Shown: positions 3,662 to 27,591 of the stretch, one piece after another
How the letters are laid out: each line of letters begins with the position of its first letter
Position numbering within the stretch: the first letter of the stretch is position 1
From: Schizochytrium sp. TIO01
Taxonomy: Eukaryota; Protista; Bigyra: Labyrinthulomycetes
Length of the DNA stretch: 64,000 nt
Direction of reading: 5' to 3'
NCBI GenBank assembly: GCA_004764695.1
Contig: SMSO01000025.1
Coordinates: 2,976,001 to 3,040,000, forward strand
Position numbers and translations under genes: made by a program
The notes under the pieces: generated by a model
The model's database searches: none
The model's input: only the letters and a program-made list of their open reading frames with translations
Told to the model about the DNA's origin: nothing

Positions 3662-4969
3662 ATGAAGCTGTTATCTAGCAGCTTTATGGTTGCTGCAAGC
3701 GTAGCTCTTCTTGCGTGCCCCATAAAAGCCGGGTCTTCATCTTTGTCGTCGTCGCCTGGTATTGTTACAGGCGAAAACTATATGCGGGATGATATCAAAA
3801 TGCATGGTGTTGAGGAAGAGGACGAGATCCTTCAAAGTATGGGTATGGAGGCGTTGGCAGAAGCTGACTTAGCCTCGCGCGAAAAACCAACATTTCGAGA
3901 CCGGTCCACTCCACCCTTATGGAACAGTAACTCGACTATTGAAATCGTTGCCACACTTCCAGATGCTCCATTCGGAGTCGCTATAGAGCACAAAAGTGGT
4001 CGACTCTTTTATTCTGCTCATCCTTATGCTAACCCTGATCTAGACGCGGGTGAAGGTCTTTTGAATGAATGGATCACAGATGAAGGAATCTCTCGTCCTT
4101 TTCCTTCTCCTGAATTTCAAAAGAAATATGTGCACAAGATTGCTGCAATTGCAGTGGATAATATCCGTGGCTGGCTAATTGTTCTTGACAGTCACCCATT
4201 TGAATATCATCAGGAAATGCGCATCATTGTGATAGAGATCGCCTCTGAAGAAATTGTCCATCGCTATACTCTACCTTATAGAGATATTGGTGATGCAACC
4301 GGCCACGCAATGGTTCTCTGCCCTCGTTCACAATTTATCTACATTGCTAATTCTGGCGTGCAAAAAAGTATACCTTCTTTAATTGTCGTAGATATACATA
4401 TATGGCGTTCATGGTCGCTCTTGAAAGGTCATGAATCAGTTGCTCATCGATCGGTTTTGCCAATCCTCAATAATCAAGACCCTATTGACTATCCGTGGCT
4501 AACTGGCCTTTCATCACTTGCAGTCGACTCCAAAAATGACAGACTTGTCTTTGGATCAATGTTCGGAGACTACCTTTACAGCCTTTCCCTTAAAACCCTT
4601 CGTGGGGTTATGAACCCAAAGGTCGCAAGCTCCCTTGGTACACAGATCCAACAACTTGGACCCAAAACAATATCTGATGGTATTGTTGCAAACCCAGCGA
4701 ACGGGGATCTATATATCTCTGATTTTGAACATTCTGCAGTAACTTTAATTGAACCTACGCAAGGGTGGTCAGTTATGACACTTGTACAGGACTCTCACCT
4801 CTTACGTTGGCCCAGTAGCATTGTCATAGCCAATCATTATGTTTATGTCGCCTGTTCAGCTTTTGACAAGATCATGGACGGGGACCATCGTCTTCATGCA
4901 AAGCCATTTCATATTGTAAGGTTTCCTGTTTATGACGCTAGTTCTGAGACCAAGCATGACGAGTTGTGA
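3662..4969 (+). CDS. Major royal jelly/Yellow-like six-bladed beta-propeller protein with signal peptide and HDEL
   Basis: 435 aa with a hydrophobic N-terminal signal peptide. Propeller-type motifs (GVAI..SGRLF, AIAVD..RGWLIVLD, KTISDGI, LYISDFEHSAV, LLRWP) resemble the MRJP/L-dopachrome tautomerase-related family. Ends KHDEL. Confidence 0.7.
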   Translation: MKLLSSSFMVAASVALLACPIKAGSSSLSSSPGIVTGENYMRDDIKMHGVEEEDEILQSMGMEALAEADLASREKPTFRDRSTPPLWNSNSTIEIVATLPDAPFGVAIEHKSGRLFYSAHPYANPDLDAGEGLLNEWITDEGISRPFPSPEFQKKYVHKIAAIAVDNIRGWLIVLDSHPFEYHQEMRIIVIEIASEEIVHRYTLPYRDIGDATGHAMVLCPRSQFIYIANSGVQKSIPSLIVVDIHIWRSWSLLKGHESVAHRSVLPILNNQDPIDYPWLTGLSSLAVDSKNDRLVFGSMFGDYLYSLSLKTLRGVMNPKVASSLGTQIQQLGPKTISDGIVANPANGDLYISDFEHSAVTLIEPTQGWSVMTLVQDSHLLRWPSSIVIANHYVYVACSAFDKIMDGDHRLHAKPFHIVRFPVYDASSETKHDEL

Positions 4970-5384: not shown

Positions 5385-6287
5385 CTACAAGCTAGACTGC
5401 ACTTGCCAGTGGCTCAGCACAGGGCCTCGTACCTGTCGTGAACGCGCCTTAAAGCTCTCACGAACGAGTTCCTCTTGTGTTTCCTTAGGCATTTCATCCT
5501 GACCTTTGAAGAAGTCTTCAAGAAGCTCTTCAGGCACAGTATCGAAGGCACACTCCGCGCTGGCGTAATGACATGATATTGCCTTGCGAAATCCTTGCGT
5601 AGAATTTCGTCCACTTCCATGAATCAACAATGGGTGGAAAAAGACACAATCTCCAGTTTCCATTTCCAGGTAAACTCGCTTCTCCATGTCAATATCGTCC
5701 TTCACGCCATGGTAGAGCTTATTAACACCACCTTCCCAGTCAGGGTTACCATGGGTTAGCAGAGGACCCTTATGACTCCCCGGAATCACGGCCAGGCACC
5801 CGTTCTCGCGATGGACATGTTCCATTGCAACCCATGTAGCAATGATCTTGTCTGCAGGACGGATTGGAAAATAATGCAAATCTTGATGCATAGGGTGCCG
5901 CGACGTGCCCTGTCCAAGATCAGGGGGCTTGTTGATGAGCATGTTGTGAATAGCACGTACTGACTCGCTGCCAATGACTGCCGATACGTAATCCAACATG
6001 AGGGAGTGCTTGCAAAACTCGAACATTACTGGGTCCTCTTGAAAATCTTGAATCTTGGTAACATCCTTACTCGAGCGAATCTTGCCCTTCTTGCGTGCAA
6101 TCTCAATATCCTTCATGACGGTCATACCAAATGCTGGCTCAACCTTGCCTGAGCAGATATCTTCGAACCTATCCCTGTAAATATCCAGCTCCTTCGACGA
6201 GAAAAGCCCCTTTACCACAAAGAATCCGTCCTTCTCATACTGTTCTTTCAGCTTTTTCAGCTCCTCTCCTTGCGGTACCGCCGCCAT
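5385..6287 (-). CDS. PHYH: Phytanoyl-CoA dioxygenase (PhyH family, Fe/2-oxoglutarate)
   Basis: HNMLINKPP, RHPMHQDLHYFP (HxD), ENGCL.VIPGSH, FFHPLLIHGSG and FRKAISCHYAS closely match PHYH. Start placed at ATG 6287; the track start at 6320 is TTG. Confidence 0.92.
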   Translation of the reverse strand: MAAVPQGEELKKLKEQYEKDGFFVVKGLFSSKELDIYRDRFEDICSGKVEPAFGMTVMKDIEIARKKGKIRSSKDVTKIQDFQEDPVMFEFCKHSLMLDYVSAVIGSESVRAIHNMLINKPPDLGQGTSRHPMHQDLHYFPIRPADKIIATWVAMEHVHRENGCLAVIPGSHKGPLLTHGNPDWEGGVNKLYHGVKDDIDMEKRVYLEMETGDCVFFHPLLIHGSGRNSTQGFRKAISCHYASAECAFDTVPEELLEDFFKGQDEMPKETQEELVRESFKARSRQVRGPVLSHWQVQSSL

Positions 6288-7641
6288 GATTGCCAACTTG
6301 GTCTTCCCAACAAGAACCAAACTTAAAACACCAAGACTCTAAAACTTGCTTGGGCTTGCTCTTGAGGTCTCAATTCCGGTTTGCTCCCGAGTCTCACTAG
6401 GGCACCTAATTCTCTTCACTATGTTTCTCCAATCCACCTCTATGTATACCTATCCTTACAGGACGATAATGGTAGTATCCTCTCTCCTGTTTTCGTAGTA
6501 CTGGACTATCTCTGGACTTCGGTCCGCCAGGTCCACGAACCAAATTGCACCTTCCATAGTAACCCCCAGCCTTACTCAAAGGCAGAATCCAGGTCCCCGT
6601 ACTCTTCAGCAAGCTTCAGGCGAACTCCCCTGTCCATTGCTCCGAGCGAGATTCCTGGCCTCTGAACCCAAGCCGCGACGTGCAACTGAGCAGCCAAATC
6701 GCTCAACCAGAAATCTTCATTTCAGAACTGGCGGACCGGCAGAGAAGCATGCATGCCGGCTTGGGGGTGCTTTGCGAGACGTCCCAGGATACGGTAATTT
6801 AGAACGTTCCTTTTGTTCTTGTGCCTTTTGACCTCGGCTATAGGTATGCCTAGCCTAGCTAGGGAAGTGTAGAGATATTAATCAATACGGGAAACAGCCT
6901 AGCCTTGAGAAAGATGAGCACATTAACATTAACTCGAAGCACAACGAAGTAGGAATGTCCTTCCTGCTCTTGGATGTAAGTAGTGATCGTTTATTTGGCG
7001 TTTTGGCAACTTGCATCGATACTCATGTCGGCACTTCACAAGACCCGTGTTGACTCCAACGGGAGCGGTAGAGCCTCTTCAGGATGACAGCTTTATTCTT
7101 TTTATTTTTACATGTAGCTTTCCATGTTATTTTCTAAAACAATTGATTGATTATTTCTTATTGTGTATAAAATTTAAGTGCTTACAGTGAGCATTATTTG
7201 CAGTAGGTAGTACGAAACCCTCATTAGGGCTTATGGGGATGCAAAATGTGCAAGCCCGAAGTATAAGTGGAAGGTAAAAAGAGCATCACCACATATCTTT
7301 CCTCTTTTCTTGAAGGCGGAAAGGATCTGTGTTCCATATGGCCATATGGCTCGCACATGTCTCACTGGTAGAGTTGCCGGTGACAGCATGTGTATGCGCT
7401 TGATATGTTGTGTTGCAAAGAGAGCAAGACGGTGGCCAAATCTTGCAAAGATTGAACAACAACTCAAACAGAGAGGCCCTGGAAGGGCTCTGAATCTATA
7501 TCAAGATGTGGATGACCTTCTCAGCAATCTGCTAGTTTTCTTGTATCTTTTCTTAGTCTGAAGAGATAACTGGCAGAGCATACTAGTACTACTTTGTCTA
7601 CTACTTTGTAAGAAAATTCTTTTTGGAGAAGGAAGCAACGT

Positions 7642-10600
7642 TCAGGCGTCCATCACAGAGGTAAATCCAGAGGGTGTATGAGGTCCGATAACGAGTTGCT
7701 CTGCGCCTGAAATGCCTGAAGCAACAGCCAATGGTGCATCCTCAGGTCCCGCATCGCGGCCGTACAAAGCACATCGGACATTGGATACTTCTTGAATATG
7801 CCAAGACAAAGGTTCCATACGATTGGCCATTTCTGTAGACAATTTATCGCATTGCACAAGCAAATCAGGACCATGGGCCATACCGTGCGCCATGCTGTCA
7901 TGGCTGTATCCGATTCCCGACATGAAGAAGGGCCGAATTGGCTCAAATTGAACAGTTACACGCCGCCCATCCTGGAGGACCATGATCACTGTGCAGGTTT
8001 GGAAATGACGTGTGCCATTGGTTTGATACTCCAACGAGTGGCCTGCAGCCTCAACCTTGCCATAGGGTGCATGTTCCGGTCCAAAGGGGTCGCCAAAGAT
8101 GTGCGCAGCTCCATTTTCGACTGTGCCATCTTCAGTCTGTTGTGAATGATACGTGAATCCACCATTTGGGACGTTGATGGGAGTCCAGAACCAGTAAAAC
8201 TGAGGCAGGGTCTGTGCGAGAGGTCTGCAGGCTTGGTTGATGGCGTATCTTGCCAGACGGTTTGACACAACGAGGTTGCGCTGCTGGTTCCTCTTAGCAC
8301 CTTTGTCTGCTTGGAGATGCGGGCGTCGACCCCACGAACGGTCGCGTGTACCCCACCAGTCGTTGACCACGATCTTTTGCGACCCGTCCACGAGAATAAG
8401 TCCATCCCAGCCCACAAGTTGAGTGAATCGCTCATACGCAAACTCACCAATGCCTCGGATGTTGTTCGCGTAAGGTGGTTCCATGACTGGCTCAAAACGG
8501 GCTTTCATTGTCAAAGATGCCTCCACCTTACCAGGAACAGTTACATCGAGCTGAGCAACCTGCAACGGCCGCTTAATGGTGATACGGATTGGTCCAACAG
8601 CACTGTCCATGGTAACTCGAGTCGGAGCTTCGTTAGCATCTATATGAGAAGGCCACTCTTGCTCGGTGAGCTTGCGTGAAACACGGACGTTGTGCTGCAC
8701 ACCTTCCACAATCACAGAAAATGAGGCATCCATCACGCGACGAGCCGGGTAGAATCCGAGAGCAGTCGCAAAGAATACCTTTCCTTCCGAATCGTAACCA
8801 TTGAGGAACCAACGATCATAAACATCACGGCGACCCTCCCCCGCAGGGATATCTGCTCCATCCTTTAAATTTAGGAGAGATTTGGGCGAGAAGTGCGCCA
8901 GAGGTTCATCGTACGGAGTAGCACTGCGAATCACCACAGGAGCATCAGAGGGCCGGTCTCCAGGGAGCGCGATTCCAGCACGGTCGCGTTCAAGCATTTT
9001 GTCTTCGACATGTCGGTAAGTAGTGAGCACACCGTTCAGATTTTTACCATGTGCTCTGCGCTGGATTACTTCGTAAAGTACTTCCGAAGCATCGATACGT
9101 TCCAGTGCTTTGACCACTCGTCTTAGCATGCACTCGCGACTACGCTGGAACTGGGCCTGCGCCGTAGCACTCAGAGATGCTGGTGGAGTAGCAAAGATCG
9201 GAGTCATGGCCGCAAGAAACATAGATAGGCGGTAGTCCCGCCAGCAGGTCTCCGATGTATAGCCACCAAGGCGCTTTGCATCCCCGAGAGCTTCGCTGAG
9301 AGACTTGACATATTCGGAAACCAGTACACGGTCACAAGTATCCCCAGCATCAGGTGCTGTATCCAAGTCAAGGCCGACGAAGGTAGCCAAATCATAGATT
9401 CCCTTCCCTTTGGAGCTTGATTGCCATTCAGCACTGAGCCAGCGTACCTTACGGCGATCATATGCATTATCAAACTTTAGCCCTGAGTGGCAGACTTGGT
9501 CTTCTTTTATGCCTTCCACAGCTGCGGGCCACAACATGTTTTCCTTACGGGCATTCCCATGAATCACAGTCATTGGGCCTTCCATCAGCTCGTCCAAAAC
9601 AATGTCGAGGTGATCAATGAATGCTCGAATGCTTCGTTGACTCTCGGGACTTACCAGATTGGCAAATTCAGGCTTCTTCATTAATGACTGAAATCCAGAG
9701 TCAGCCTGGTAGTTCATAAACAGAGGATGCAGTGTCTTAAAGGCGTCAAACGCAGCATGCCAGTGCAGGCCAAAGTCATTATCCAAAACCTCTTCTGAGG
9801 GTCTCCAGTGCACAGCGTGGAAACGAGCGTAGCGAGATGCCACGCTGCAGGCTTCTTGCCAGCTTGCGCCATCAATCTCGCAGCCAGGCTGGAGAGGCTT
9901 TGCATCTTCGAAAAGAAAGCATGCGTCCCCAGACAAGCGGTCAAAGTCAGCTTTGAAGCAGCGTGGGACTTCTAGGAAAGGTTTATCCATTTTGGTCGCA
10001 AAATCTTGCACGCGTGGCGCAACGGTATCATAAAAGTACGTTTCGCGCTGGTATCCACACAGAGGTCTGAGTTTGAGCTTGCCCCATACATCTGTGGTAC
10101 TCATTTTCACGACAAACGAGGTCGGAAGCTGTTGTGCGTTGGCTTTGGCTGCATCAGAAAACCTCACGGTGAGTCGGGCGGCGTTGCTAAGCGAAGCTCG
10201 AGGCACGGGCTCCTCATCTTTTGCAAAGCTTTCATCTTCGTCATCAGACGCCTCCACGGAGAAGAGCGGCGCAGTTGTGAGCTCTACGACATTGGCTCCA
10301 ACAGCCTTGCTCACCCACGCTGCATCAACTTCTGCAGGTTGCCTTGGAAATGAAGGCTTCGGCAGAACCGGCGTGCCTTCGAGGCGTGCTGCTCTCAACG
10401 CCATAACGAAGAGTGTTCGCGCCGCCATGAGTTTGGCCCTCACCACCTGCCCAAGTATAGACTGTGGATCGTTCATTGCCCAGGCTGCAAGTTGTGCATG
10501 CCCCAGCGTCAATGCGAGCAGTTGCAAGAAACCTCGTTGGCCCCATCGTCTCGCTAGACGGTGTAGCATCCACTGCAAAGTGGAGAACCCGGACCAGATC

Positions 10601-11112
10601 CCAGCAGCGAGGCCCTCGCGATTTTCCACGACAACAGGAGCGCCCTTGGATGCTGCCAGGGTCTGATGCTGCAGAAACCCATGGCATGCAAGCCGGGCTG
10701 CAGCTGTAATGGCAGTGAAGCGAGCGCCAAATTTCCATGCCAGGGCTACAATCAAGAGGTCGCCAGCCTGCAGCATCTTGACGAGGTTTGGCCAGATCTG
10801 TGGAATTTGGGGTGTAGGGTCGTCCAGCCAAAAGACCTTGCCAGAACCCGTCGCATTAGGCCTCGAATTGCGTGAATTGATCTCCGTTGATGCTGCAAAT
10901 CGCGACCTATTTCCGGCTGAGTAGGACTTGGATTTGCTGCCATCTTGAGAGGCCATCTCTCCAGAGGCCTGCTGCTGGAGGCCCACGGAGGCGGGGGGAG
11001 ACGCGAGGTCGCTTGTGCGCGGGCTGCGCAGGTCTTCCTCGCGACGGACGACCTCGAAGTCGTCTTCACCCATCCTAGCGGCAGGCGCGGCGCTAGCTGC
11101 GTGCTCGGACAT
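7642..11112 (-). CDS. Membrane-associated APH/choline/EcKL-kinase-like pseudokinase fused to a C-terminal DRSWG beta-barrel (tocopherol-cyclase/AttH-like) domain; paralog A
   Basis: 1156 aa uninterrupted ORF. Disordered N-terminus, hydrophobic segments (~10780-10470), kinase-like fold (FVVKM, RETYFY, HGNARKEN, AEWQ, YDLATFV) and C-terminal domain (YDRWFLNG, GTRDRSWG, EQLVIG). Colinear with the 14704-18354 paralog. Confidence 0.8.
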   Translation of the reverse strand: MSEHAASAAPAARMGEDDFEVVRREEDLRSPRTSDLASPPASVGLQQQASGEMASQDGSKSKSYSAGNRSRFAASTEINSRNSRPNATGSGKVFWLDDPTPQIPQIWPNLVKMLQAGDLLIVALAWKFGARFTAITAAARLACHGFLQHQTLAASKGAPVVVENREGLAAGIWSGFSTLQWMLHRLARRWGQRGFLQLLALTLGHAQLAAWAMNDPQSILGQVVRAKLMAARTLFVMALRAARLEGTPVLPKPSFPRQPAEVDAAWVSKAVGANVVELTTAPLFSVEASDDEDESFAKDEEPVPRASLSNAARLTVRFSDAAKANAQQLPTSFVVKMSTTDVWGKLKLRPLCGYQRETYFYDTVAPRVQDFATKMDKPFLEVPRCFKADFDRLSGDACFLFEDAKPLQPGCEIDGASWQEACSVASRYARFHAVHWRPSEEVLDNDFGLHWHAAFDAFKTLHPLFMNYQADSGFQSLMKKPEFANLVSPESQRSIRAFIDHLDIVLDELMEGPMTVIHGNARKENMLWPAAVEGIKEDQVCHSGLKFDNAYDRRKVRWLSAEWQSSSKGKGIYDLATFVGLDLDTAPDAGDTCDRVLVSEYVKSLSEALGDAKRLGGYTSETCWRDYRLSMFLAAMTPIFATPPASLSATAQAQFQRSRECMLRRVVKALERIDASEVLYEVIQRRAHGKNLNGVLTTYRHVEDKMLERDRAGIALPGDRPSDAPVVIRSATPYDEPLAHFSPKSLLNLKDGADIPAGEGRRDVYDRWFLNGYDSEGKVFFATALGFYPARRVMDASFSVIVEGVQHNVRVSRKLTEQEWPSHIDANEAPTRVTMDSAVGPIRITIKRPLQVAQLDVTVPGKVEASLTMKARFEPVMEPPYANNIRGIGEFAYERFTQLVGWDGLILVDGSQKIVVNDWWGTRDRSWGRRPHLQADKGAKRNQQRNLVVSNRLARYAINQACRPLAQTLPQFYWFWTPINVPNGGFTYHSQQTEDGTVENGAAHIFGDPFGPEHAPYGKVEAAGHSLEYQTNGTRHFQTCTVIMVLQDGRRVTVQFEPIRPFFMSGIGYSHDSMAHGMAHGPDLLVQCDKLSTEMANRMEPLSWHIQEVSNVRCALYGRDAGPEDAPLAVASGISGAEQLVIGPHTPSGFTSVMDA

Positions 11113-12552
11113 TGCGCCTTTGAGGAGTTATGGAATTGGAGAAACCAGAAAACCGAGGAAATGGAATTTCTTTCATAAATAATGATTTCGAAGAAACAAC
11201 TTTTAATTTAATCTTTACTCTTTTAATTTAAAAAAAATAGAAAGTAAATGTAAAGGCCGCTCAGAAATAAGGAAAAGAGAGAAACTCTTGTAGAGTATCC
11301 TCTAAAAGCCTAAATAAGTGAGGTAGGTACTATTTCTCTCTATTGCCCAACCTTTTCTCATTTCACTTTCGTTCATCATTCAAAGATTGCGGAGTACTTT
11401 TCTCTCGCCCTAAAGACCAGATCAGAAACTGGTCGCACATCTCTTATGGATCGTCCATTGCTCCATGAGGTCTTAACTTAGACCATGTCTGGTCGTGCAA
11501 CAGTTCAAGCTGCTTTATAGACCTAAGATCCTCCTCGCCCTCTATTTGAGGCCATTATCTTCAGTTCTGCGAATGATCATCTTTCGAGTTCTATTCCGAT
11601 TTCTGTTTCTGTTTCTTGATCTATTTATTTCTATTTCTTTCTTTCTTTTTCATGCTCATGTTCGTATTTTTATTTTATTTTTATTTTTATTTTTATCGAC
11701 GGTGATGAGAGGCGTCGTCAAAACCGTGTTCAACGTCTTCTCGCTCGTGCTCATCTCCGTGAAGCCAACCGGCTTTGGGGGCAGCACCAGTCACTCTTTG
11801 CACGGATCGAGAAGACCAAAATCAATTCGCAGATATCAGTGACAGCCCTTCACCGAAGCAGAACTCAGAGGCACCTGAAGGCGAGAGACGATGCCACGAA
11901 CTCGAGAACTCGGAGACTCTGAGCAAGAAAGGAAAGAATTAATTTATGTATGTAGTAGGCACTATGCACTACCTAGTACTCACTTGCTACTAAAAGAATC
12001 TATTTGACATAAAATAAACTAAAATGATTGAGAATGGAGTGAAAATGAATGAGTGAATGAAATTAAATGAAGAAGAAGAAGAAGAAGAAGTCATCCTCGA
12101 TTGAGCTGCGACGACCCCTCGAACTCGGGAGGCGCAGAACTCGTGGCGCAGGAGCAAAGAATGGCCGCTAGATGCCAAGGGATCAGGCGGCACGAGGGCC
12201 TGGCTGGGCTCCGACGCCCCCTTCGCCGGCGCAAGCAGACTCGCGGAGTGCGGGAATTGACAGAACAGGACAGGACATCCATCCATCACAAAGAGTTCTT
12301 TCCATTGAAGAAAACAGTCCTCTTCCTCTGCACGTACAAACGAAGCTTCTAAAGTTTACCAAGAAACAGAATGAATGCACAGCAATCTTCGCTCCAGAAC
12401 CGCGCGAACGAGAAGATTAACGGACAGAGGAGACCGCCTCAAGTGAGTATAGGCTTCATCGGTCACCACCTTTCTCAGTTTTAGGCCTCAGCTTTGCTTT
12501 GGGCTTCTGAGACAAACAGACCTTTCATGATTGTAATAGATATATAAATAAT

Positions 12553-12620
12553 CAAATAAACAAACAAATAAACAAACAAATAAACAAACAAATAAATAAA
12601 CAAATAAACAAATAAATAAA
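12553..12620 (+). repeat. (AAAC/AAAT)n compound microsatellite
   Basis: Read directly from the sequence. Confidence 0.8.
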
Positions 12621-14703
12621 AGAAAAGAGGAACTCTTATTGACCTCAGGTCAGTCCAAGAACTATGGGTTCCAGCTTTGCTTTGCATGAAACACAGCGGA
12701 ATAAGTATGCACTCGCTTTGGCAATCAAGTCCAACTTCAAGACGCATCAGGTACCCATCAGCAGCGATCGGCGAAGCAGCAATAGCGGCCTGGTGATATC
12801 CACACCCGCGCTGCCCGACTCCAAGATCGGCATCTGAAGGAGGAGGAGGTCTTTGCCACGCCCGGTTCCAATGTGACAGCGGTTCTTGGGATCTATCTAC
12901 ATGGCATAGTACCCTCAAGGTTGACTGGAATCGCGGAAGAATAGCTTAAGTTAGATTGTTTGTTGGTCTTCTGGTCGGCTGCCCAGCAGCTAGCTCCTGC
13001 TGGTTGATTCCATTTGGAGCTGGCTGGCTGGAGTGGACTTGGCTGGCTGGCTGCAGACCCTGAGCCGAAGTCGAAGGGCTGCGTTATCTGCTGCTGTTGT
13101 TGTTGTTGAAGTCTCAGACGCTGCGGCAAGAAAACGAACCCTCCGCGAGGATCCATCCACGAAGGATTTTACCAAAAGCGGCAGCGAAAAGACCCTCTTA
13201 TTTCATGTGTGCGGCGCTCTGTTAATTGCATTTCCATTCTACTGAGATCCTTTGATTTCGCTGTTTGTGGACGGACCTCTCTTTTCAGGGCCCATTCTGC
13301 ATTGCGAACTAACGTCTTCTTCGCTGACAGACTGACAGAGCCGAGATCGAGCTCGCCGGCGCGGACGGGAGAGGCGCATGCTTGGCACAGGCCAGACTGC
13401 CTGGCAGACCCGCGGCTGGTGGTTGGGCTGGCGGTGACGCTGGAGGAAACTTGATCGAACTCAGCGTTTATGGGTCGATACATGCTGAGAAACGATGTCA
13501 ACGCTCGATGCGGCGGCAGCGCCATCGACCGGAATTACAGGTTGGACCCGCTCCGCGAAATGATTGGCCGGATTCTATGCATGGCTGCCTGGGCCGTAGC
13601 GGGAGAGCTGCGCTTGACGGGCTGTGCGCGCAAAGAGGCCGCGTTTCTGCCCACCGTTTCTAGCCATAATTTCGATCGATTTCGATTTCAGCATTGTGTC
13701 TAGACTAGATAGACGAGGCCTGGAAATCCACAGTTTAAGTTAAGTGTCCACCGCTCTTCAGAGCTCTCAATGCCCTGCGCCGCAAGGATGGCCGAAGGCT
13801 GCTCCAGGAAAGCGAAGAGGAGGCAGGTATTGAACGATGCTCAAGCACTTTGTGGTTCGAAAGAAGGCAGAAATTAATTAGACAGCCAGCCCTGGAGAAC
13901 TAAAAATGGGACTCCCTTGGATCGAAAGATGAAAGACGTGCATTTCTTTCCATTTTAGAATGTTTTATTGGCGATAGGAATGTGCGGACCGTTGTGCTGC
14001 GGATATGAATGTCTGAAGCTTGTGTGGCACAACGTGTGCTGTGCGCAGATCTTCTATGGAACATATTGACGACCCCCCACCCCTTCTCGCCAAAAGAACC
14101 AACAAGTCTGTAAATAACAAACGAGTCGGCTCGGAATTTTGAGCAAATCGGATAAAATGAAGCGCTGGTAGCGTACTTTGGTGTGCTTGATTGTGTTTTG
14201 CAGAAAAAATAAATATTAAAATAATATTCAAGGTAAAGGAGAACCTAGCAAGTCGTAGGCTTGAGCTGTGAAGAGGTGGTCCAATTCAACCAACGCGGGG
14301 CCTATGACAACGGCCAGCAGAGTATGCGTTGGAGAAGATTGGACCTGATATTAATAAAAATAGTGTCAAATCCTAATTCTCATCAGACCAAGACTCTTGC
14401 GTTCCTATGGTTCGTTTCTGATATTGAGCAATAACTTCTGAGTTAAAAAAGCACGATTGCGAGGATGAAAGTCTAGTAAAGGTGGATGTTTTGCTCTTTT
14501 CTAATTCTGTTTCTTTCTTGTCTGTACATGGGCATTTACATGAAAGACAAGAGTAGAATATAGAGTAAGAAAGGTAATTTTTTAGCAAGCTGGACTGTAA
14601 AATCATCGCACTAATTCTCAAGAGCCTTGGCTGAGTGAAACTTATTCTTGTCTTAGTAATCTTTGCAAAAAAACAAAAAAACAAAAAGGTATATATGAAT
14701 TAT

Positions 14704-17700
14704 TTAGGCATCCATTGCAGACGTAAAGCCAGAAGGATCGTGTGGCCCGATAACCAGTTGTTCTGCTCCGGAGACGCCCGATGTGACTGCCACAGGAGGG
14801 TCATCTGGCCCTGCATCGCGACTGTGCAGTTCGCACCGAACAAATGAGTACTCTTGAATATGCCAGTGCAAAGGAGCCATGCGATCTGCCATTTCAGTCT
14901 TGAACTTATCGCATTGCACAATTAAATCTGATGGATGTCCCATGCCATGCGGCATAGTGTCATGACCATAACCGATTCCTGTCATGTAAAATGGGCGGAT
15001 AGGCTCGAATTTGAGGGTGACACGCCGGCCATCTTGCAGAACCATGACGATAGTGCAAGTTTCAAAATGCCGCGTACCACTGCGGCTATACTCAAGCGAG
15101 TGCCCAGCAGCCTCAACTTTGCCATACGGCGCATGTTCTGGTCCAAACGGATCTCCAAAAATGTGTGCCGCGCCATTGTCCACCGTACCATCTTGTGATT
15201 GCTGTGAATGATAGGCAAATCCACCATTCGGGACATTGATCGGCGTCCAGAACCAATAAAACTGTGTAATCTTATGAGCCCAATGCCGGGAAACTTGGTT
15301 AATGAGGTACCTCGTTAAAGGGTTTGCCAAGAGTGCTCCACCTTGTTGGTTCTTCTTGGCACCTTTATCTGCAGCACCGTGGGGTCTGCGCCCCCAAGAC
15401 CGATCGCGTGTTCCCCACCATCCATCTGCCGAAATTTCGTCGCCATTGTTTACCTTAATCCATCCCTTCCACTCGGTAAGTTGTGTGAAGCGATCATATG
15501 TAAAGTCACCAATACCACGGACCATATTGGAATAGGGTGGTTCCATAATTGGTTCAAATCGAGCTTGCATAGTTAAATGTGCCTCCATCTTGCCTGGAAT
15601 ACGCACAATAAGTTCAGCCACCTTCAAAGGCTCCTTGATGATGATGCGGATGGGCCCGGCATTACTATCAACCTCTAAGCGCTTGCCTGGGGAGTAGTTC
15701 CGTGCTGAAGGCCACTCCTTTTCTGTTAACTTACGAGAAACTCGTGCATTATATTGCTCCCCATCTACAACAAAGGAAAATGAAGCATCCATAACACCTC
15801 GGCCCGGGTAAAAGCCCAGCGCAGCAGCAAAATAGTGAGCGCCGTCAGGCGCGTATCCATTCAAAAACCAGCGATCATAGGCGTCCCTTCTGCCTGTACC
15901 AGGAACTGGTTTGGGGCCATCCTCTAGAGCGAGGAGAGCAACAGGGTTAAAGTGGCAAAACGGTTCATCCTGCGGTGTAGCACTTCGAACTACAACAGGG
16001 GCATCTCGAGGACGCTCCCCTGGGAGCAATATACCTGCTCGGTCTCGCTCAAGCATTTTGTCTTCCACATGTCTATATGCAGTCAGAACGCCATTCATAG
16101 TTCGCTGCTTCACTCTTTTATTCACAACTTCAAGTAGAACCTCTCCAGCATCGACACGTTCGATAGCCTGCAATACACGTCTTAAGGTATGTTCCCGAAC
16201 TGTTTTAAGCCGTTCCGACTCACCTGACCCGATACCCTCAGCTTGCAATACTACTATCGGAATCATCGCTGCAATAAAAAGACTTAGACGGTAATCACGC
16301 CAGCAATCGTCTGCGCTATACTTTCCCAAATGACGAGGGTTCTCAAGAGCTTGTACAAGTGTCCTATAATACTCCCCAACCAGTACTCGATCACATGTGT
16401 CACCAGCCTCAGGGCTTACATTCAGGTCTAGACCAACAAAGTACGATAAATCCGACACACCAACTCCCTTTGAGCTTGTTTGCCAGTCTACACTCAGCCA
16501 CCTCGTCTGCTTTCGATCATAAGAATCATCAAATTTTAAACCTGCATGGCAGATTTTGTCCTCTTTGACACCCTCCACCGAAGCCGGCCAAATCATATTC
16601 TCGCTGCGTGCATCAGCGTGCGTGAATGTCATAGGCCCTTCACAAAGTTCATCCAGAACTGCCGACATATGTGCAAAATAGGTGCGCAGAGTTCGCTGCA
16701 TTGCTGGGCTCACGAGCGAGGCATATCGTTCTTGGGTCATGAGATTACTGAAAGCACGGTTTGACAAGTCATACAAAATCGCAGGATGCGAGATTTTCAT
16801 GAAATTGTACGTTGAGTGCCAGTGTAGATCAAAGTCGTCATTCAACTCTTGAAGACTTGGTCGCCAGAATAAGGCATGAAACCTTGCATACCGTGTTGCT
16901 ACACTGCAAGCTTTTTGCCAAGTTCCTCCCTCAACCTCGCACCCAGGCAATAGAGGGGCTGCATCTTCAAAGAGAAGGCAGAACTCTGTGGTAAATGGAT
17001 CATAATCTGAAGCATAGCAATGTGGCACTTCTAGGATTGGATCTTTGGATTGGGCTGCCTTGGTTCGAATAAGCGGAACTAGTTTAGAGTAAAAATGCGT
17101 CTCGCGAAGATACACACCTACCGGCCGCATCTTCATAATGACGGATGGATTAGTGCTCGCCATTTTAAGAATCAAGGTATGGGGAAGATCATTGACGTCA
17201 GCTGCTTCAGCATCAAGGTACTCGGGCACCAGACGCACAGTCTCTCCAATAAATCCTCGAGGTTTTTCAATATCTTCCTCTGTCACCTCTTGAATGTCTT
17301 CCTCGACGGGCTGAGACAAACTGAGGACACGCACATTTGTGATTTCGGTGTTGAGGACTTTACTCAGCCATTTGGGATCAACCTGAGATGAGTTTGCAGG
17401 AAACTTATGGCGAGGAAGCAACACGGTTCCTTCTAAGCGCAGCTTTCGAATTGCAACCACATACATCGTTCTAAAAGCCATCCAAAGATTCCGAAAAATC
17501 TGCGAGAGTAATGTCTGGGGATAGCAGAGTGACCAAGCGATACCTTGAGACTGGCCAAGTAGTATAGCTGCAAGATGTGCCAGGCCCCGTTCGCCGCGAA
17601 ACATTGCCACACGATGCAGAATACCTTGTAAAATTGAAAACCCAACCCATATGCCTAATATAGAACCCCCTTCACCAGGGTTTCCCTTGGCAAGAGTCAT

Positions 17701-18354
17701 TTGCTGATTTACAAAAACATGAGATGCGAAACGAGCAGCAGTAGTTAGAGCAAGTGCTTTTGCTCCAATCCTCCAAGCAAGTATCGTTAATACAAGGTCT
17801 CCAGCTTGCAGTGGTTTAACAATCTGTTCCTGATGTTTTGGCACCTGTGGATCGGGATCATCGTAAAAGGAGCCAAAGCCGGATGTCGTCGGCTCCTTCA
17901 AATTCACCTTTAGAGGTGGTTTGGGCTTCTCGGACCTCGCGCTGGGTTCAGATTCTTTTGGCCCCATTTTCTGTAAGGAGTCTTCCTGAATGGAATTCTT
18001 CACCGGTACGTCTTTCCCTGCGTATGATTCTTCTTCAACCTGATCAACCTTGCTCCCTTTCTCTTGGAGCTCAGCTTCTTCCTTTTCTCCAGGTCTTATT
18101 TTTAAAAGAGTTTGGATGTCCTCTTGCAAGAATCTCTCTTGATCGTGTTCCAAACCTAACCCGCTTGCTTCTTCTGTGTTTTTGTCCTCTTGGTCTCCTT
18201 GGTTTCCTTCTTCCCCTTCTTCTTCTCCAGGCACTGATTCGCCTTCAATATCTGTATCTTCTGTCTCGTCAAGGTGGTGTTGCTGTTGTTGACTTTCCTG
18301 GGGATCCTTTGTTACAACCTCGTAGCTGCCTGAGCCTTCGTCGCTATCACTCAT
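14704..18354 (-). CDS. Membrane-associated APH/choline/EcKL-kinase-like phosphotransferase fused to a C-terminal DRSWG beta-barrel domain; paralog B, catalytic motifs intact
   Basis: About 1216 aa from ATG 18354 (the track start at 18459 is GTG). Acidic disordered N-terminus and hydrophobic segments. Kinase motifs GFIG, LILKM, RETHFY, HADARSEN, VDWQ and DLSYF. The C-terminal domain is highly similar to that of paralog A. Confidence 0.82.
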   Translation of the reverse strand: MSDSDEGSGSYEVVTKDPQESQQQQHHLDETEDTDIEGESVPGEEEGEEGNQGDQEDKNTEEASGLGLEHDQERFLQEDIQTLLKIRPGEKEEAELQEKGSKVDQVEEESYAGKDVPVKNSIQEDSLQKMGPKESEPSARSEKPKPPLKVNLKEPTTSGFGSFYDDPDPQVPKHQEQIVKPLQAGDLVLTILAWRIGAKALALTTAARFASHVFVNQQMTLAKGNPGEGGSILGIWVGFSILQGILHRVAMFRGERGLAHLAAILLGQSQGIAWSLCYPQTLLSQIFRNLWMAFRTMYVVAIRKLRLEGTVLLPRHKFPANSSQVDPKWLSKVLNTEITNVRVLSLSQPVEEDIQEVTEEDIEKPRGFIGETVRLVPEYLDAEAADVNDLPHTLILKMASTNPSVIMKMRPVGVYLRETHFYSKLVPLIRTKAAQSKDPILEVPHCYASDYDPFTTEFCLLFEDAAPLLPGCEVEGGTWQKACSVATRYARFHALFWRPSLQELNDDFDLHWHSTYNFMKISHPAILYDLSNRAFSNLMTQERYASLVSPAMQRTLRTYFAHMSAVLDELCEGPMTFTHADARSENMIWPASVEGVKEDKICHAGLKFDDSYDRKQTRWLSVDWQTSSKGVGVSDLSYFVGLDLNVSPEAGDTCDRVLVGEYYRTLVQALENPRHLGKYSADDCWRDYRLSLFIAAMIPIVVLQAEGIGSGESERLKTVREHTLRRVLQAIERVDAGEVLLEVVNKRVKQRTMNGVLTAYRHVEDKMLERDRAGILLPGERPRDAPVVVRSATPQDEPFCHFNPVALLALEDGPKPVPGTGRRDAYDRWFLNGYAPDGAHYFAAALGFYPGRGVMDASFSFVVDGEQYNARVSRKLTEKEWPSARNYSPGKRLEVDSNAGPIRIIIKEPLKVAELIVRIPGKMEAHLTMQARFEPIMEPPYSNMVRGIGDFTYDRFTQLTEWKGWIKVNNGDEISADGWWGTRDRSWGRRPHGAADKGAKKNQQGGALLANPLTRYLINQVSRHWAHKITQFYWFWTPINVPNGGFAYHSQQSQDGTVDNGAAHIFGDPFGPEHAPYGKVEAAGHSLEYSRSGTRHFETCTIVMVLQDGRRVTLKFEPIRPFYMTGIGYGHDTMPHGMGHPSDLIVQCDKFKTEMADRMAPLHWHIQEYSFVRCELHSRDAGPDDPPVAVTSGVSGAEQLVIGPHDPSGFTSAMDA

Positions 18355-20198
18355 GAGATAGTACAACAATGATAAGGTTTTGCTCCCAAATTTCTTGCGG
18401 CTCAAGAACCCGAATTGAACGTCCAATTCCCTTGGTGCTATTCTGAGCGTGTTGATCACTGTAATATCTCAAGGTGAGATACGGATCTGCTTCGTTGTAG
18501 CGATCGCATTCTTCACCTTCAAGTCCGCCTCACAATTCCATCTACTTTTCGCTTCTTTTACTCAGAGGCCCAAACAAGCAAGGTTTCGCAAACAAGCTTT
18601 CCAATTATGATACACTAGCTAACTTTGGAGGGTCGTGAACTCTTGCACCGTATTCTGCTTAATCCATCACGTGTGGTTACATGCCCCTAGAGACATAATG
18701 TAACCCTGATGAAACAAAATATGACACTAAACTATTCGCAAGTCCTGACAACGCTTTTAATATTTCGCCACTCCGGCAGATGCTATCGCGGCCCAATTAT
18801 GCCTACCTACCCACGGTCTCCGTCGTTGCGTTGCCAGGCACGACATCTCCAAGCTCCAAGTAAAAGTCAAGATCTTTTACCCAAGAGACGAGCTCGACCG
18901 TCTCTATATGCGCAACGCCTGCGCTTGTACATGCTAACCTGCTACGCTCGCAGATAAGTACGTGCCTAAATCTGGCGTCTCTGCTGAGCTTTACTCTTAT
19001 CACTCGACAATACCGACTCTGCGGTTCTGATGAGGACCGTGGTCACACAGCACCGGCGGACTCACGGCTCCAGCCGGTCCAGAATGAGGTTTCGAGCGCG
19101 ATCCGCAACGGCAAAGATTGGACGCTGTAATCTCAGCACGGCTGCCCACCCTGGAGCCCGCGAGCAAAGACGCCGTTGAGAGCCGCGCAATTAATCGCCT
19201 CCGACGGCGTCTTCGCAGAGGCGTTTCTTTCTCTGGCAGAGAGAGAGAGCGCCTCTATGAGCCACCCTGCCTGGTTCTTTGGTACTTCTCTCGTGAGTGT
19301 GTGTGTGTATCATTCACTCACTCACTATCTGTGATTAGCGATGGTTGGTTGGTAGTATCCTGCAAGAATTGGAAACAGTGAAAGCTGACCTGACCTAGCT
19401 CTGGAGGCACCCACGAAACTACCATCTCAGTTATCTATCGCAGATAGATAGACCAAGCCTCGCCTCTTCGGCACCGCCAGTCGAAGCCAGTGAGTGCGTT
19501 TTACGGAGGTTGGCTGGCCGATTCGCGCAAAGTCTTGCGCAAACCTTACGCGGAAAGAAGGTTTGGTGACGTTAGTAGTTTCCAAAGATCTTCTCTCTTC
19601 AGAGTTCTTTGTCTTTTTTCTTTCTGCTACAATAAGAAAAAGGTACCATATCTTAATTGAGTGATGGAGAACGTTTGGAACGACAGTAGGTAGTTCCATG
19701 GGGGTTCCGGTACTTGAGCGAGCGTAATGTAGGCAGTGGAGCGAGCAAGTGTCGGTTGAGCTCCTCTTGTTCTATGTTATGGACAGAGTGAGAGAAAGCA
19801 TGGCTTCTTTTACTGAGAATTTGAGTTTCGATGAGTGGGCTTAGAGAACGAAGGAATAGGTCTGGTGTTGGCTGTCAATGTTTGTAAGCTGGTGATCCTG
19901 AGCCAGCTTGCTTGTGAATTTATAGACTGCCACCCACCTGCAAGGGTAGACCAAACTCGGGGAGGCCACCAAGGAGCTAGGTATACTTTGGCCTTTGGGC
20001 AAGGGCCGAGCTGTCTTGAGCTTGGCACACAAAACTAGACGTATTCACAGGTTTGCTGGTTGAAACTCGGCCGAGGCAGTAGAAAGATTACAGCTGCAGT
20101 GCCAACCTTCTTGTAATTTGATGCAGCATTGAGCGAGTGTTGCATGTCAATTAAGTGGAGGCTAAAGTGAAGTGTTTGGTAACGAAGCTTTTGCAGCC

Positions 20199-23100
20199 AT
20201 GAAAGGTGAAGCGATTGACCCCAAAGACCTTAAAGCATGTGCGAAATTACTCAAGCAGACCAAGAAGGAATCCAAAGTGCTGGAAGGATTGGCGATTCTT
20301 TCGAAGGCTCAGCCACATCAGATTGCAACCTTCATGGAGGAAGGCGCGGTTATGGTTCCTTTGACTTCTTTAATTGATCTGGCAAAACTTTCTGAGCGAG
20401 TTGTACAGGAATCCTTAGCTATACTCGCTGTGTACCTGAATCTTGAAGATCACGATGGGCCTACAAAGTTCATTGCTGAGGGGCAAACCAAGAAATCTTC
20501 ACCTTGCCGTGGCATCGAGCGCTTTCTCAAAGTTCTCCAGCAAGAGAACCAGAAGATTACTACCGAGAGTTTAAAATGTTTAGCAGGTTTATCAAAGGCA
20601 CTCAACACTTTGGAGGATGGGGCTGAGCTTTTGCAATCAATCACCGAGCATTGTATCACCCTTTTGGAGGGCGAGGAGACACCAGAGGAAGCCTGTATGC
20701 GAACCATTCGGACACTTCTTGCTGTTCTGAATGCTGGTAGTCCTGTCGAAACAATTATCAATGCAGTACTGAAAGTTTGCGTAGATGAAAGTACTCCCGT
20801 GAAAATTCAAGATGCTGCAAGTCAGATGCTATATGAAGCGACTGCTTTACCAGAGTGCACTAATTTCATTATCGAAAGTCCCGAAAGGCCTACCCAGATT
20901 TCAGCTCTCTTTCTAAATTCCATTCACCGACTTGTCGGTTATACCCCCGCGAAAGGCGAGGCCCCTGATCTCACAGAGAAAAATCTTAAACTTGCTGAGA
21001 CAGGGGCTCGAAGCGCGCTTCTGTTATTCCTGTGGATCCTTGTAAGCTGGAAGCAACCTCCACCAATGTTGGAGAGAGGAAGCGACGAGAGTGAGCTTTT
21101 ACAAAGCTGGGTCTTGGATGAATCATGTTATGATAGCCTTTTAAGTCTTTTGAAGTCCAAAAGATCGATTGTTGACGAGGTGCTTGCGTGCTTGCCTCAG
21201 CTTCCAGAACAGCACATCAAAGCCCTTGCAGACCGCAACGCCGCAGACATTCTTCTGCATTTACTCAACGAACGAAATGATCCTCAAATTGTCAATCAAA
21301 GCAAGGAAGATATTGATAGTCCTGACGATGATGTTGAGGAAGAAAAAGAGAATAGTGACGCAGAGCATGAGCATGAGCATGAGCATGACAAAATCATAAA
21401 AGAGATCCAGAATAGCGATTTGGAGCCCAAACACAAAATACCTCGCCATCCTCCATTACCACTGGAGTATGCTCTGCACATGATGTTGTCACACATGGAA
21501 GCGCCTGCTTGCAAAATTGAAGATTTGAAAACTGTAATTAGTCGTGCACCAACCCAAGCCATGCGACTACTGATGCGTCTCATCCACGAGAAAGAGGCAA
21601 AGCTGCACGATATGGAAGAGTTTAAAACCTGGATCGATGGCCTTGTCAAAGGTGGTGTTTTTCATACTTTAGCACAACAGATCCATTCCTTCACGGTTAA
21701 GGAGGCACAGGCACGGGCAATGAAGATCCTTCTTCATCTTGTACGGTGGAATTCGCAAGGGCCAAACCAGACAGCCTTGAAAGATCCTATCAAGTGGATG
21801 GATCTATGGGGAGCCTGTCTACATGCATGTGCAAGTCATTCTGAAAATCCAACGTTGACTGCGTGTCATTTGGTCGATCCTCTCCGACGCCCTCCTTTAC
21901 GTCCACTTCACGATATCGAAATGCGTTGGCCATCAAAGGCGGTTGAGACTGTGCCCGGCGAAAGTGATGTTCCAGATGACATCGCAGCATGCGCACTTCA
22001 GCTCCTTACAACTTCAATTGAAGCAGATAATGAAGAGCTAGCTTTGCATGATGCTGAAGAAGGCAAAAACGCACCATCTCGGTTCTTTGACAGAATTTTG
22101 CTTTCCGCAGACATCTGTCTAGGGAAATTTGTGGTAGAAAGTCTTATTGCAAGTGCGAAAACCTCGACTATCATGATTCAACAGGCAAGCCTCGATGCCC
22201 TTAGAGCTTTATGTAGTATTAGCAATGGGCGAGAAACAGTTCTCGCCCAAAACCTTTCAACATCGGAGGACGAAACGCATACGGATAACACAGTCGATTC
22301 AGACAAAGAGGAGGAGGTGGTTACGTTTATGTCACACGCGCAAGGGAGCAAGTTTGAGGTGATGCAGCGCATCAGTAAAACTCTTTCTCAAATTTTATAC
22401 GATCACGAACAATCTGACCAAGCTATACAATATACCATTGCAGTCTTACAAGAATTGTGTAAAGATCAATGCGAAGAAGGGCATGAGCATGATCAACCCA
22501 TTGATGCGGATCTTTTCTGTGTCGCTGTTTTGCAAGAAGCGATTCTACCTGCGCTTGTCGCTATTGTGTCATATGAGCCGCTACAAGGCAACATCGTAGA
22601 TTATGTCAAATATGTTGTTCTACGTGGTGAATGTCGTGAAAGAGCATGGAGAACGTGGCAAGAACCTGAGTTGAATGAAGAGGGAAATGCAATCTTGGAT
22701 GAAGAAGGTCATCCAGTTCTCGTCACAAAGGGCCTTGGCGACGACCCAAATCATGGACCAGACTGCAAAAGTTGGGCACCACTTCTTGATATACCATGCA
22801 GAAGCCTAAAAAGCCATAAGAGGATGACTCACTTGCCTGAGTTAAGTGATCAAACAGCAGTGGCACTCCTAGTCCGACAACCCGAGACTGATGTTTTGGT
22901 CAACCTTCTTGATGCCTTTATTAGAGTCGGGGCAGATCTCGAGCAAGCCGCCCCGCATGATGGTGTTACACCATTGATGTGGGCGTCTGTGAAAGCCAAC
23001 GAAAGGTGTACACGCAATTTGCTGGAATCTAATCGGGTGGATATTGATGCCATTGATGTTGATGGTTTTAATGTTTGCGCTTGGGGTTTTGCTGGAGCTA

Positions 23101-27415: not shown

Positions 27416-27556
27416 ATGAGGCGCGGGTTCCTGCTTGCGAAGCGCAGGAGTACTGGTGATAATGACGGTTCCGCGAGCTCATCGATGGCTAGCTCTGGCG
27501 CTACAGCCAGGATAACACCACCCTCAAACTCGCCGACCCGTGAGGCCCAACCGCTC

Positions 27557-27591
<35 letters not shown>

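Follow-up and report, generated by a model that had tools for sequence, protein, structure and literature searches.

A tandem pair of genes fusing a kinase to a probable phosphate lyase, one copy apparently kinase-dead, in the protist Schizochytrium sp. TIO01

A 64,000-nucleotide stretch of the genome of the labyrinthulomycete Schizochytrium sp. TIO01 (assembly GCA_004764695.1, contig SMSO01000025.1, positions 2,976,001 to 3,040,000), hereafter the window and numbered from its first letter, carries two colinear genes, paralogs A and B, for long multidomain proteins. In both of them an N-terminal tail and a hydrophobic region are followed by an EcKL/APH-type kinase domain and by a C-terminal beta-barrel domain. 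Judged from its sequence, the C-terminal beta-barrel is a homolog of a two-barrel phosphate-eliminating lyase, 25-phosphosteroid lyase (25-PSL), and belongs with the Rv3169 family. The kinase domain of B has a complete set of catalytic residues, whereas that of A does not. We consider it probable, from the sequences of these proteins, that they are fused kinases and phosphate lyases working as an ATP-dependent dehydratase of a lipophilic alcohol, and that A is a lyase-only subunit using the phosphoester made by B. The coordinates of the genes, domains and motifs are collected in Table 1.

Results

The C-terminal domain is a homolog of 25-phosphosteroid lyase

The C-terminal domains of both paralogs were recognised by the NCBIfam profile of the Rv3169 family (NF053593) with scores above its curated cut-off of 150 bits. 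Searches of the PDB with the sequence of this domain matched 25-PSL alone (chains 9fzn and 9g4c), with E values of 1.5e-14 for phmmer with a single sequence and 4e-24 for a profile, and with an identity of about 22–35%. A bacterial member of the family, P0022, was matched to 25-PSL at 2.4e-48. In Pfam, the C-terminal 400–450 residues had no match even at E = 10, and the stand-alone homologs of the domain showed sub-threshold matches only, to DUF7064 and DUF7065. An AlphaFold2 model of the lyase domain of B built on a 45-sequence alignment reached a pLDDT of 84.4 (33.6 in a single-sequence run), and the five best Foldseek matches of this model were all 25-PSL chains (9g2i, 9g4c and 9fzn), with E values of about 1e-24, target TM scores of 0.75–0.78 and about 410 aligned columns, which cover the whole domain. 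Pericyclases, kievitone hydratase and AttH came far behind, with E values from 1e-8 to 1e-10. The fold match was modelled for B, and the lyase domain of A is 70% identical to that of B. The initial annotation had named the C-terminal part a beta-barrel; NF053593, phmmer and Foldseek all point to a homolog of the Rv3169 family and 25-PSL and not to an anonymous module for sensing ligands.

The integrity of the lyase domain was judged on columns invariant among eight active-looking fusion proteins (73 columns in the lyase domain and 39 in the kinase domain). Paralog A keeps 72 of the 73 lyase columns, the only change being D1157N (B numbering), and P0004, one of two homologous proteins of Hondaea fermentalgiana, is changed at none. 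A second set of 49 columns, with a conservation of at least 85%, was taken from 43 further homologs, most of which are stand-alone proteins of bacterial type; A keeps 41 of these columns and B keeps 42. The conserved residues present in both paralogs include all the charged columns, the motifs RDRSWGxRP and YDR, and the His, Asp, Glu and Gln columns. In addition, the identity of the lyase domain to the outgroup protein P0005 is equal (55–56%) in A, P0004, B and the second Hondaea protein, P0002. On these comparisons, the lyase domain of A is apparently intact. Since it retains 72 of the 73 invariant columns, A is probably not the purely regulatory dead partner of B that had been suggested at first.

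The kinase domain is complete in B and degenerate in A

Both paralogs scored above the gathering cut-off (22 bits) of the Pfam EcKL profile PF02958. The catalytic set of B is complete, with the Gly loop, the ATP-binding Lys (LILKM), the Glu (RETHFY), the catalytic Asp of the HxD motif (HADARSEN) and the Mg-binding Asp (VDWQ). In A, the Lys (VVKM) and the Glu (RETYFY) alone are kept, the HxD motif being HGNARKEN, the Mg-binding motif AEWQ and the Gly loop degenerate; by its residues A would thus have the fold of the kinase family and not be a catalytic member of it. All the motifs and codon coordinates first quoted for both paralogs proved correct on recheck. A profile search of the PDB returned no solved relative for the kinase domain.

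An insert of about 25–30 residues (WPASVEGVKEDKICHAGLKFDDSYDRKQTRW) is located between the HxD and DWQ motifs, at residues 592–617 of B and 531–556 of A. It is kept in the thraustochytrid fusions, and the diplonemid protein P0008 is without it.

The loss of kinase residues is old and maintained

A and B were aligned with 13 further fusion homologs, among them a near-identical strain copy of A and one of B. The top homologs belong to Hondaea fermentalgiana, whose two proteins have consecutive locus tags on a single contig of 315 kb, and to Mucochytrium quahogii, which places the genome among the thraustochytrids. The catalytic Asp, the Mg-binding Asp and the Gly loop are all lost only in A, in its strain copy P0003 and in Hondaea P0004, which shows HAN and NWQ and no GFIGE Gly loop, whereas the 11 other fusion homologs retain the HxD and DW[QR]/DF motifs. 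At the 39 invariant kinase columns, A is changed at six, all at or near the ATP/catalytic site, and P0004 at 11, with five changed positions common to both proteins (G367A, G370S, D581N, D623E/N and Y638T/S). The description of A as a pseudokinase is therefore borne out by its relatives, since P0004 is likewise without both Asp residues and the Gly loop, and the HGN and EWQ codons are unchanged in the strain variants.

In a maximum-likelihood tree, A grouped with P0004 (support 95/95) and B with Hondaea P0002 (96/91), both pairs being within a 100/100 clade, and a tree with A and B as sisters was rejected in the approximately unbiased (AU) test (p = 0.025). The terminal branch of A (0.37) is not longer than that of B (0.41). 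The identity of the kinase domain to the outgroup P0005 is 42% for A and 36% for P0004, as compared with 49% for B and 47% for P0002, and the kinase domains of A and P0004 are 47% identical. Because the loss is common to P0004, A and P0004 form a clade and the A+B sister tree is rejected, the duplication and the kinase inactivation are, on these sequences, older than the split from Hondaea.

Between A and B, the synonymous distance (dS) is saturated, so that dN/dS was not computable with either NG86 or YN00. The nonsynonymous distance (dN), 0.36 overall, falls to 0.22 in the lyase part and rises to 0.47 for the kinase, and the lyase is the most constrained part of A. Third codon positions differ in 62% of cases over the whole alignment, in line with the initial remark that the two genes share identical stretches in which most third positions differ; that remark was slightly overstated for an identical 26-residue peptide present in A and B, in which 11 of the 26 third positions differ. 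With regard to variation within A, an allele found in three runs differs from it at 11 coding positions, none of them in the HGN or EWQ codons, and changes two amino acids (NG86 dN/dS of 0.07 over 10 changed codons). The saturated dS, the low allelic dN/dS and the A+P0004 clade uphold the proposal that A is an old duplicate under purifying selection and not a decaying pseudogene. Of the refuting conditions named at the outset, none of those that could be checked was borne out.

Paralog A is covered by transcript-like contigs

RNA-like contigs from four public runs, belonging to four studies, cover A from 7145 to 11125 with no joints. The depth of these contigs over A is 116–724, versus 0–26 in the flanks, and the contigs stop at the gene ends. 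Coverage of this kind is what an unspliced mRNA of about 3.9 kb, rather than genomic DNA, would give; the runs are guessed to be RNA, and with that provision the expression expected of A was found in all four studies. Because the contigs of the four runs end at 11098–11125, 0–14 bases around the ATG at 11112, either the 5′ untranslated region of A is very short or translation starts from Met14 (MGEDDFEVV). The 5′ loose end of one contig, of 30–31 letters, was not found within the window, and no 5′ exon is shown by it. Altogether, the sequence comparisons and the contigs support the view of A as a conserved and expressed pseudokinase.

Kinases and lyases of these families are coupled in bacteria and in other eukaryotes

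About 10 clusters with both domains were recovered in a representative search, together with hundreds of stand-alone lyase homologs (about 365 aa) and with stand-alone kinases (about 360 aa). Besides A and B, the fusion is present in at least nine near-full-length homolog clusters. The named carriers of the fusion are Hondaea, Mucochytrium and the diplonemid Namystynia. The protein of the latter (P0008, from Namystynia karyoxenos in EukProt; Euglenozoa) has the kinase–lyase fusion and the N-terminal region, far from the Labyrinthulomycetes, which points either to an old origin of the fusion or to its passage from one marine heterotrophic protist to another.

Among genome contigs of bacteria and archaea, at least 589 stretches were found with a gene for a stand-alone lyase homolog, and two scans of metagenome contigs, with alignment A1 and with P0005, found nothing. 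A kinase open reading frame (ORF) recognised by a hidden Markov model (HMM) of the fusion kinase lies 0–50 bp from the lyase gene in eight of the 80 best loci, and on the same strand in seven of these eight. In a Pfam analysis of the 142 ORFs flanking stand-alone bacterial lyase genes at 37 loci, APH was the commonest family, with 14 matches. In M. tuberculosis, the gene of an APH-type kinase (Rv3168) shares an operon with that of Rv3169, under repression by the TetR regulator Rv3167c (PMC5340868). The linkage of the genes in bacteria and their fusion in the protist lend support to each other. Other recurrent neighbours of the bacterial lyase genes (loci L003–L082) encode TetR regulators, cytochromes P450, S-adenosylmethionine-dependent (SAM) methyltransferases, short-chain dehydrogenases/reductases (SDR) and enoyl-CoA hydratases, and this neighbourhood fits the modification of lipids or xenobiotics.

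The N-terminal region

The N-terminal region of the fusion proteins contains three to four hydrophobic or amphipathic segments with Kyte-Doolittle maxima of 1.1–1.5 (19-residue window; 1.2–1.5 in A) and with conserved charges within. It had no Pfam match even at E = 10, and a search of the ESM Atlas with it gave no usable match. The sole segment with a Kyte-Doolittle value above 1.6 is inside the C-lobe of the kinase and not in the N-terminal region. The designation of the proteins as membrane-associated was thus not confirmed, the N-terminal maxima being under the usual threshold for transmembrane helices; an attachment to membranes through the conserved hydrophobic region is plausible from its sequence.

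At their N-termini, A, B and the two Hondaea proteins have acidic tails that share an acidic run followed by [FY]EVV and are otherwise unalignable. The variants of this motif are DDFEVV, GSYEVV, TDFEVV and SGFEVV, and it is found at 11047–11067 in A and at about 18310–18330 in B. The combination of an acidic run with [FY]EVV corresponds to the pattern of Atg8/LC3-interacting motifs.

Layout of the gene pair and neighbouring genes

As first annotated, the two genes are same-strand paralogs: both minus-strand ORFs were found, the encoded proteins are 56% identical over 1074 residues (BLASTP, E = 0), the frame of A is open throughout its length and the end of B matched position 18354. The ORF of B delimited mechanically extends from 14704 to 18459, where its upstream end is a GTG; the ATG at 18354 is the likely start because its Met corresponds to the first residue of the homologs, which also have the acidic [FY]EVV motif. 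A and B are the only copies of the gene in the 64 Mb, 37-contig assembly.

Table 1. Positions in the window of the two paralogs, their domains and their kinase motifs.
Feature	Position	Strand	Remarks
Paralog A	7642..11112	minus	1156 aa, intronless ORF; order N-terminal tail, hydrophobic region, pseudokinase, lyase
A, conserved hydrophobic/amphipathic N-terminal region	10333..10827	minus	about aa 96–260; 48% identical to B
A, EcKL/APH-type pseudokinase domain	9013..10332	minus	about aa 261–700; Pfam envelope aa 309–528; PF02958 39.2 bits
A, degenerate Gly loop RASLS (GFIGE in active homologs)	10186..10200	minus	from homolog alignment
A, Asn codon in place of the HxD catalytic Asp (HGN)	9553..9555	minus	same in strain variants
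A, Glu codon in place of the Mg-binding Asp (EWQ for DWQ)	9427..9429	minus	same in strain variants
A, Rv3169-family/25-phosphosteroid-lyase-like domain	7645..8850	minus	about aa 755–1156; NF053593 196.3 bits; apparently intact
Paralog B	14704..18354	minus	1216 aa, intronless; architecture as A, kinase intact
B, conserved hydrophobic/amphipathic N-terminal region	17395..17889	minus	aa 156–320
B, EcKL/APH-type kinase domain	16075..17394	minus	complete catalytic set; PF02958 50.1 bits
B, Gly loop GFIGE	17242..17256	minus	from homolog alignment
B, catalytic Asp codon of HADARSEN	16612..16614	minus	from homolog alignment
B, Mg-binding Asp codon of VDWQ	16486..16488	minus	from homolog alignment
B, Rv3169-family/25-phosphosteroid-lyase-like double beta-barrel domain	14707..15909	minus	aa 816–1216; NF053593 193.1 bits

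The spacer between A and B is 3.6 kb long and holds at least one other transcribed stretch: at 12101–12400 and beyond, a contig depth of 26–45 was observed in two of the four runs, so that something else is transcribed between the two genes. The ORFs of the spacer at 12481–12918, 13169–13525 and 11495–11842 had no Pfam match. At 1.3 kb downstream of A, on the minus strand (5385–6320), there is a gene for a PhyH-family Fe(II)/2-oxoglutarate dioxygenase (PF05721, E 9e-49). A PhyH hydroxylase adjoining a kinase–lyase cassette would fit a route of hydroxylation, phosphorylation and elimination. The further neighbours are without evident link to A or B; they encode an ankyrin-repeat protein of 1626 aa (20172–25052, plus strand), a RING/TRAF zinc-finger protein (27416–30943, plus), an MRJP/yellow-family protein (3662–4969, plus) and an alpha/beta hydrolase (1745–2707, minus).

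Discussion

Since the C-terminal barrel is a homolog of 25-PSL, the kinase and the lyase of the fusion proteins are read as a two-step cassette in which a substrate is phosphorylated and the phosphate is then eliminated. In Sterolibacterium, 25-HSK phosphorylates a tertiary 25-hydroxy steroid and 25-PSL eliminates the phosphate to give a delta-24 alkene, the net reaction being an ATP-dependent dehydration; 25-HSK is reported to be a phosphotransferase that bears little resemblance to others (PMC8449060, PMC7411048, PMC11061730). By analogy, the kinase of B would convert a hydroxyl group, a poor leaving group that is probably tertiary or otherwise unactivated and borne by the side chain of a sterol or isoprenoid, into a phosphoester, and the lyase domain of B would eliminate the phosphate to leave an alkene. 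Paralog A, which appears to have lost kinase catalysis and, under purifying selection, to have retained its lyase, the fold of its kinase and its expression, would most likely be a lyase-only subunit, its dead kinase acting as a scaffold that might bind substrate or nucleotide. The phosphoester for A would be supplied by B in the simplest case, or by another kinase. A steroid or isoprenoid side-chain alcohol is our best guess for the substrate, because steroid side chains are the site of action of the only members of the two families characterised so far, ecdysteroid 22-kinase and 25-HSK/25-PSL, and because the wider fold class handles prenyl groups.

A and B might form a mixed dimer through their lyase domains. 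Prediction of an A+B lyase–lyase complex gave a score of 0.46, the best of three controls scoring 0.00, with at least 75% of the contacts agreeing between runs and a partner pLDDT of at least 79. The mark applied to these predictions is reached by 51 of 78 solved complexes and by two of 108 mismatched pairs; at scores of 0.60 or below, it is reached by five of the 78 solved complexes, and all four passing mismatches (of 180) are in this range. The A–B heterodimer of the initial annotation thus obtains a weak score in silico, and the prediction fits homodimers equally.

Several observations weigh against the dehydratase interpretation or limit its reach. The domain identities, the motif losses and their conservation, the transcription and the bacterial kinase–lyase linkage are demonstrated, whereas the reaction, the kind of substrate, the roles of A and B relative to each other and the dimer are inferred for the fusion proteins. 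The integrity of the lyase domains was judged from conservation and not from known catalytic residues. The prediction of the A–B complex is weak and does not separate a heterodimer from homodimers, since such a result is to be expected of any close paralogs when the family self-associates. The kinase of the fusions is not closest to the lyase-adjacent kinases of bacteria: on the fusion-kinase HMM these reach 56–103 bits versus 110–180 bits for other stand-alone EcKL/APH kinases and, because the latter score higher, the link between kinase and lyase is at the level of families only. It has to be noted as well that the expression runs are RNA by guess only and that the transcript data are those of A, and that the adjacency of the Hondaea genes rests on consecutive locus tags on one contig.

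A different role for the pair, with B as a stand-alone phosphotransferase whose end product is the phosphorylated lipid, the barrels binding or sensing a ligand and A being purely regulatory, is unlikely. The contrast of kinase and pseudokinase on which a regulatory A would be based is real and conserved, and the wider fold class of the barrel, with AttH and the pericyclases, includes proteins with a pocket for lipophilic ligands. However, the barrel is specifically of the 25-PSL/Rv3169-family type, its highly conserved polar residues (RDRSWG and the His, Asp and Glu columns) are all kept in both paralogs, and the bacterial stand-alone members of the family are linked to APH kinases; moreover, a lyase domain that is the most constrained part of A (67–70% identity, dN 0.22) is unexpected in a regulatory appendage. 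We regard it as very unlikely that the C-terminal domain is a hydratase of the kievitone hydratase/CrtC-like type, which would hydrate an isoprenoid double bond, the kinase then trapping the tertiary alcohol as a phosphate. Although kievitone hydratase and AttH-like proteins are structural relatives of the domain (E 1e-8), and the reaction of 25-HSK is fully reversible, tertiary phosphoesters being high-energy compounds (PMC8449060), 25-PSL matches about 14 orders of magnitude better, with the whole domain covered, and is the only protein found by the sequence searches of the PDB. A kinase-dead A would, furthermore, have lost the trapping step, and yet A is conserved.

With regard to the kinase of A, there is very little likelihood that it is active by a non-canonical mechanism, with Asn as the base and Glu as the Mg ligand, and that A and B are isoenzymes for different substrates. 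The ATP-site Lys and Glu are kept, a Glu could in principle bind Mg, and the kinase fold is conserved between A and P0004; against this, three separate catalytic elements were lost together, the Mg position is occupied by Asn and not by Glu in the Hondaea ortholog, and the canonical residues are kept in all 11 other fusion homologs. That A was recently inactivated and is drifting to a pseudogene, or that its substitutions are errors of assembly, is scarcely credible, nothing beyond the motif losses themselves speaking for it. Its frame is open over the full length, the same codons are found in the contigs of other strains and studies, the loss is common to the Hondaea ortholog, the allelic dN/dS is low, its branch is not longer than that of B, and its contigs are transcript-like. 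Pseudogene decay and sequencing error were rejected on the open frame, the loss in common with Hondaea, the identical codons in the strains and the allelic dN/dS.

A more elaborate form of the dehydratase proposal, which we find doubtful, would place at membranes or lipid droplets an ATP-driven dehydratase of sterols or isoprenoids that is fed by a hydroxylase, with the PhyH-family protein as a candidate, and that works as an obligate, asymmetric A–B heterodimer. In such a heterodimer one live kinase would feed two lyase sites, and the dead kinase would be an allosteric or substrate-delivery module. If true, this would be a desaturation route new to eukaryotic lipid metabolism, present in thraustochytrids and at least one diplonemid.

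Comparison with known systems

The closest parallel is the 25-HSK/25-PSL system of Sterolibacterium denitrificans, in which an otherwise unreactive lipid alcohol is first activated by a kinase and then turned into the alkene by a lyase, the logic proposed for A and B; the C-terminal domain of A and B is a true homolog of 25-PSL. The bacterial enzymes, in contrast, are separate soluble proteins encoded at unlinked loci and are catabolic under anoxia, whereas A and B are fused eukaryotic proteins of 1150–1220 aa with an extra hydrophobic N-terminal region, duplicated and with one copy kinase-dead. With the Rv3168–Rv3169 pair of M. tuberculosis, A and B share a lyase domain above the cut-off of the Rv3169 family, and the pairing of a kinase beside such a lyase recurs in many bacteria; unlike the gene fusion of the protist, the bacterial pairs of this type are separate genes without assigned function.

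In ACAD10 and ACAD11, an APH-type kinase is also fused to a domain that eliminates the phosphate installed by it, 4-hydroxyacyl-CoA being converted into enoyl-CoA (PMC12440821, PMC11342911). The bacterial lyase-adjacent kinases match the ACAD11 kinase domain weakly. Unlike the Rv3169-family double beta-barrel of A and B, however, the eliminating domain of ACAD10/11 has an acyl-CoA dehydrogenase fold and acts on CoA thioesters, so that the second domains are non-homologous; no ACAD domain was found in A or B in Pfam, NCBIfam and PDB searches, and the likeness, as far as sequence goes, is one of analogy only. Class III/IV lanthipeptide synthetases likewise hold a kinase and a phospho-lyase in one polypeptide and dehydrate an alcohol via a phosphoester; they differ in being bacterial, in their substrates, which are Ser/Thr of peptides, and in the unrelated fold of their lyase.

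As regards the single domains, A and B match PF02958, the EcKL profile among the EcKL, APH and choline-kinase phosphotransferases, B with the Gly loop, Lys, Glu, HxDxxxxN and DxQ motifs. Unlike members of the EcKL family, A does not have the full set of catalytic residues and neither paralog is stand-alone, known EcKLs being stand-alone proteins of about 400 aa. The lyase domain shares its two-barrel fold class, in which a pocket takes up lipophilic substrates, with kievitone hydratase, AttH and the fungal pericyclases Phm7, CghA and Fsa2 (the Foldseek matches at 1e-8 to 1e-10); the latter proteins are similar to A and B in structure only, at about 9–10% identity, and carry out hydration or cycloaddition with no phosphate involved.

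A literature search found no description of a fusion between a kinase and an Rv3169-family domain, of such a fusion in a eukaryote or of a paralog with a dead kinase; nor did it find any paper about EcKL kinases of thraustochytrids or about the Rv3169 family, DUF7064 or DUF7065. The initial statement that no such system had been described holds for the fusion, its eukaryotic host and the kinase-dead copy, and does not hold for the unfused bacterial 25-HSK and 25-PSL or for the analogous ACAD10/11, which are published. What is known is the chemistry, and the lyase family as separate bacterial enzymes; what is new is the fusion, the eukaryotic host and the duplicate with one kinase-dead copy.

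Significance

Until recently, the ATP-dependent dehydration of lipids through a phosphoester was known only as a curiosity of anaerobic bacterial cholesterol breakdown, and the structure of 25-PSL was released in January 2026. The protist fusion constitutes Rosetta-stone evidence that the Rv3169 family (DUF7064/DUF7065) and the neighbouring APH kinases, including Rv3168–Rv3169, work together, two large and mostly unannotated bacterial families being concerned, and it would extend phosphoester dehydration chemistry to eukaryotes. In industry, thraustochytrids serve for the production of sterols, squalene, carotenoids and docosahexaenoic acid (DHA), so that a putative lipid-modifying pair is directly testable in them. 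The paralog with a dead kinase and an apparently intact lyase would represent a natural experiment in which a bifunctional enzyme was split into specialised subunits after duplication.

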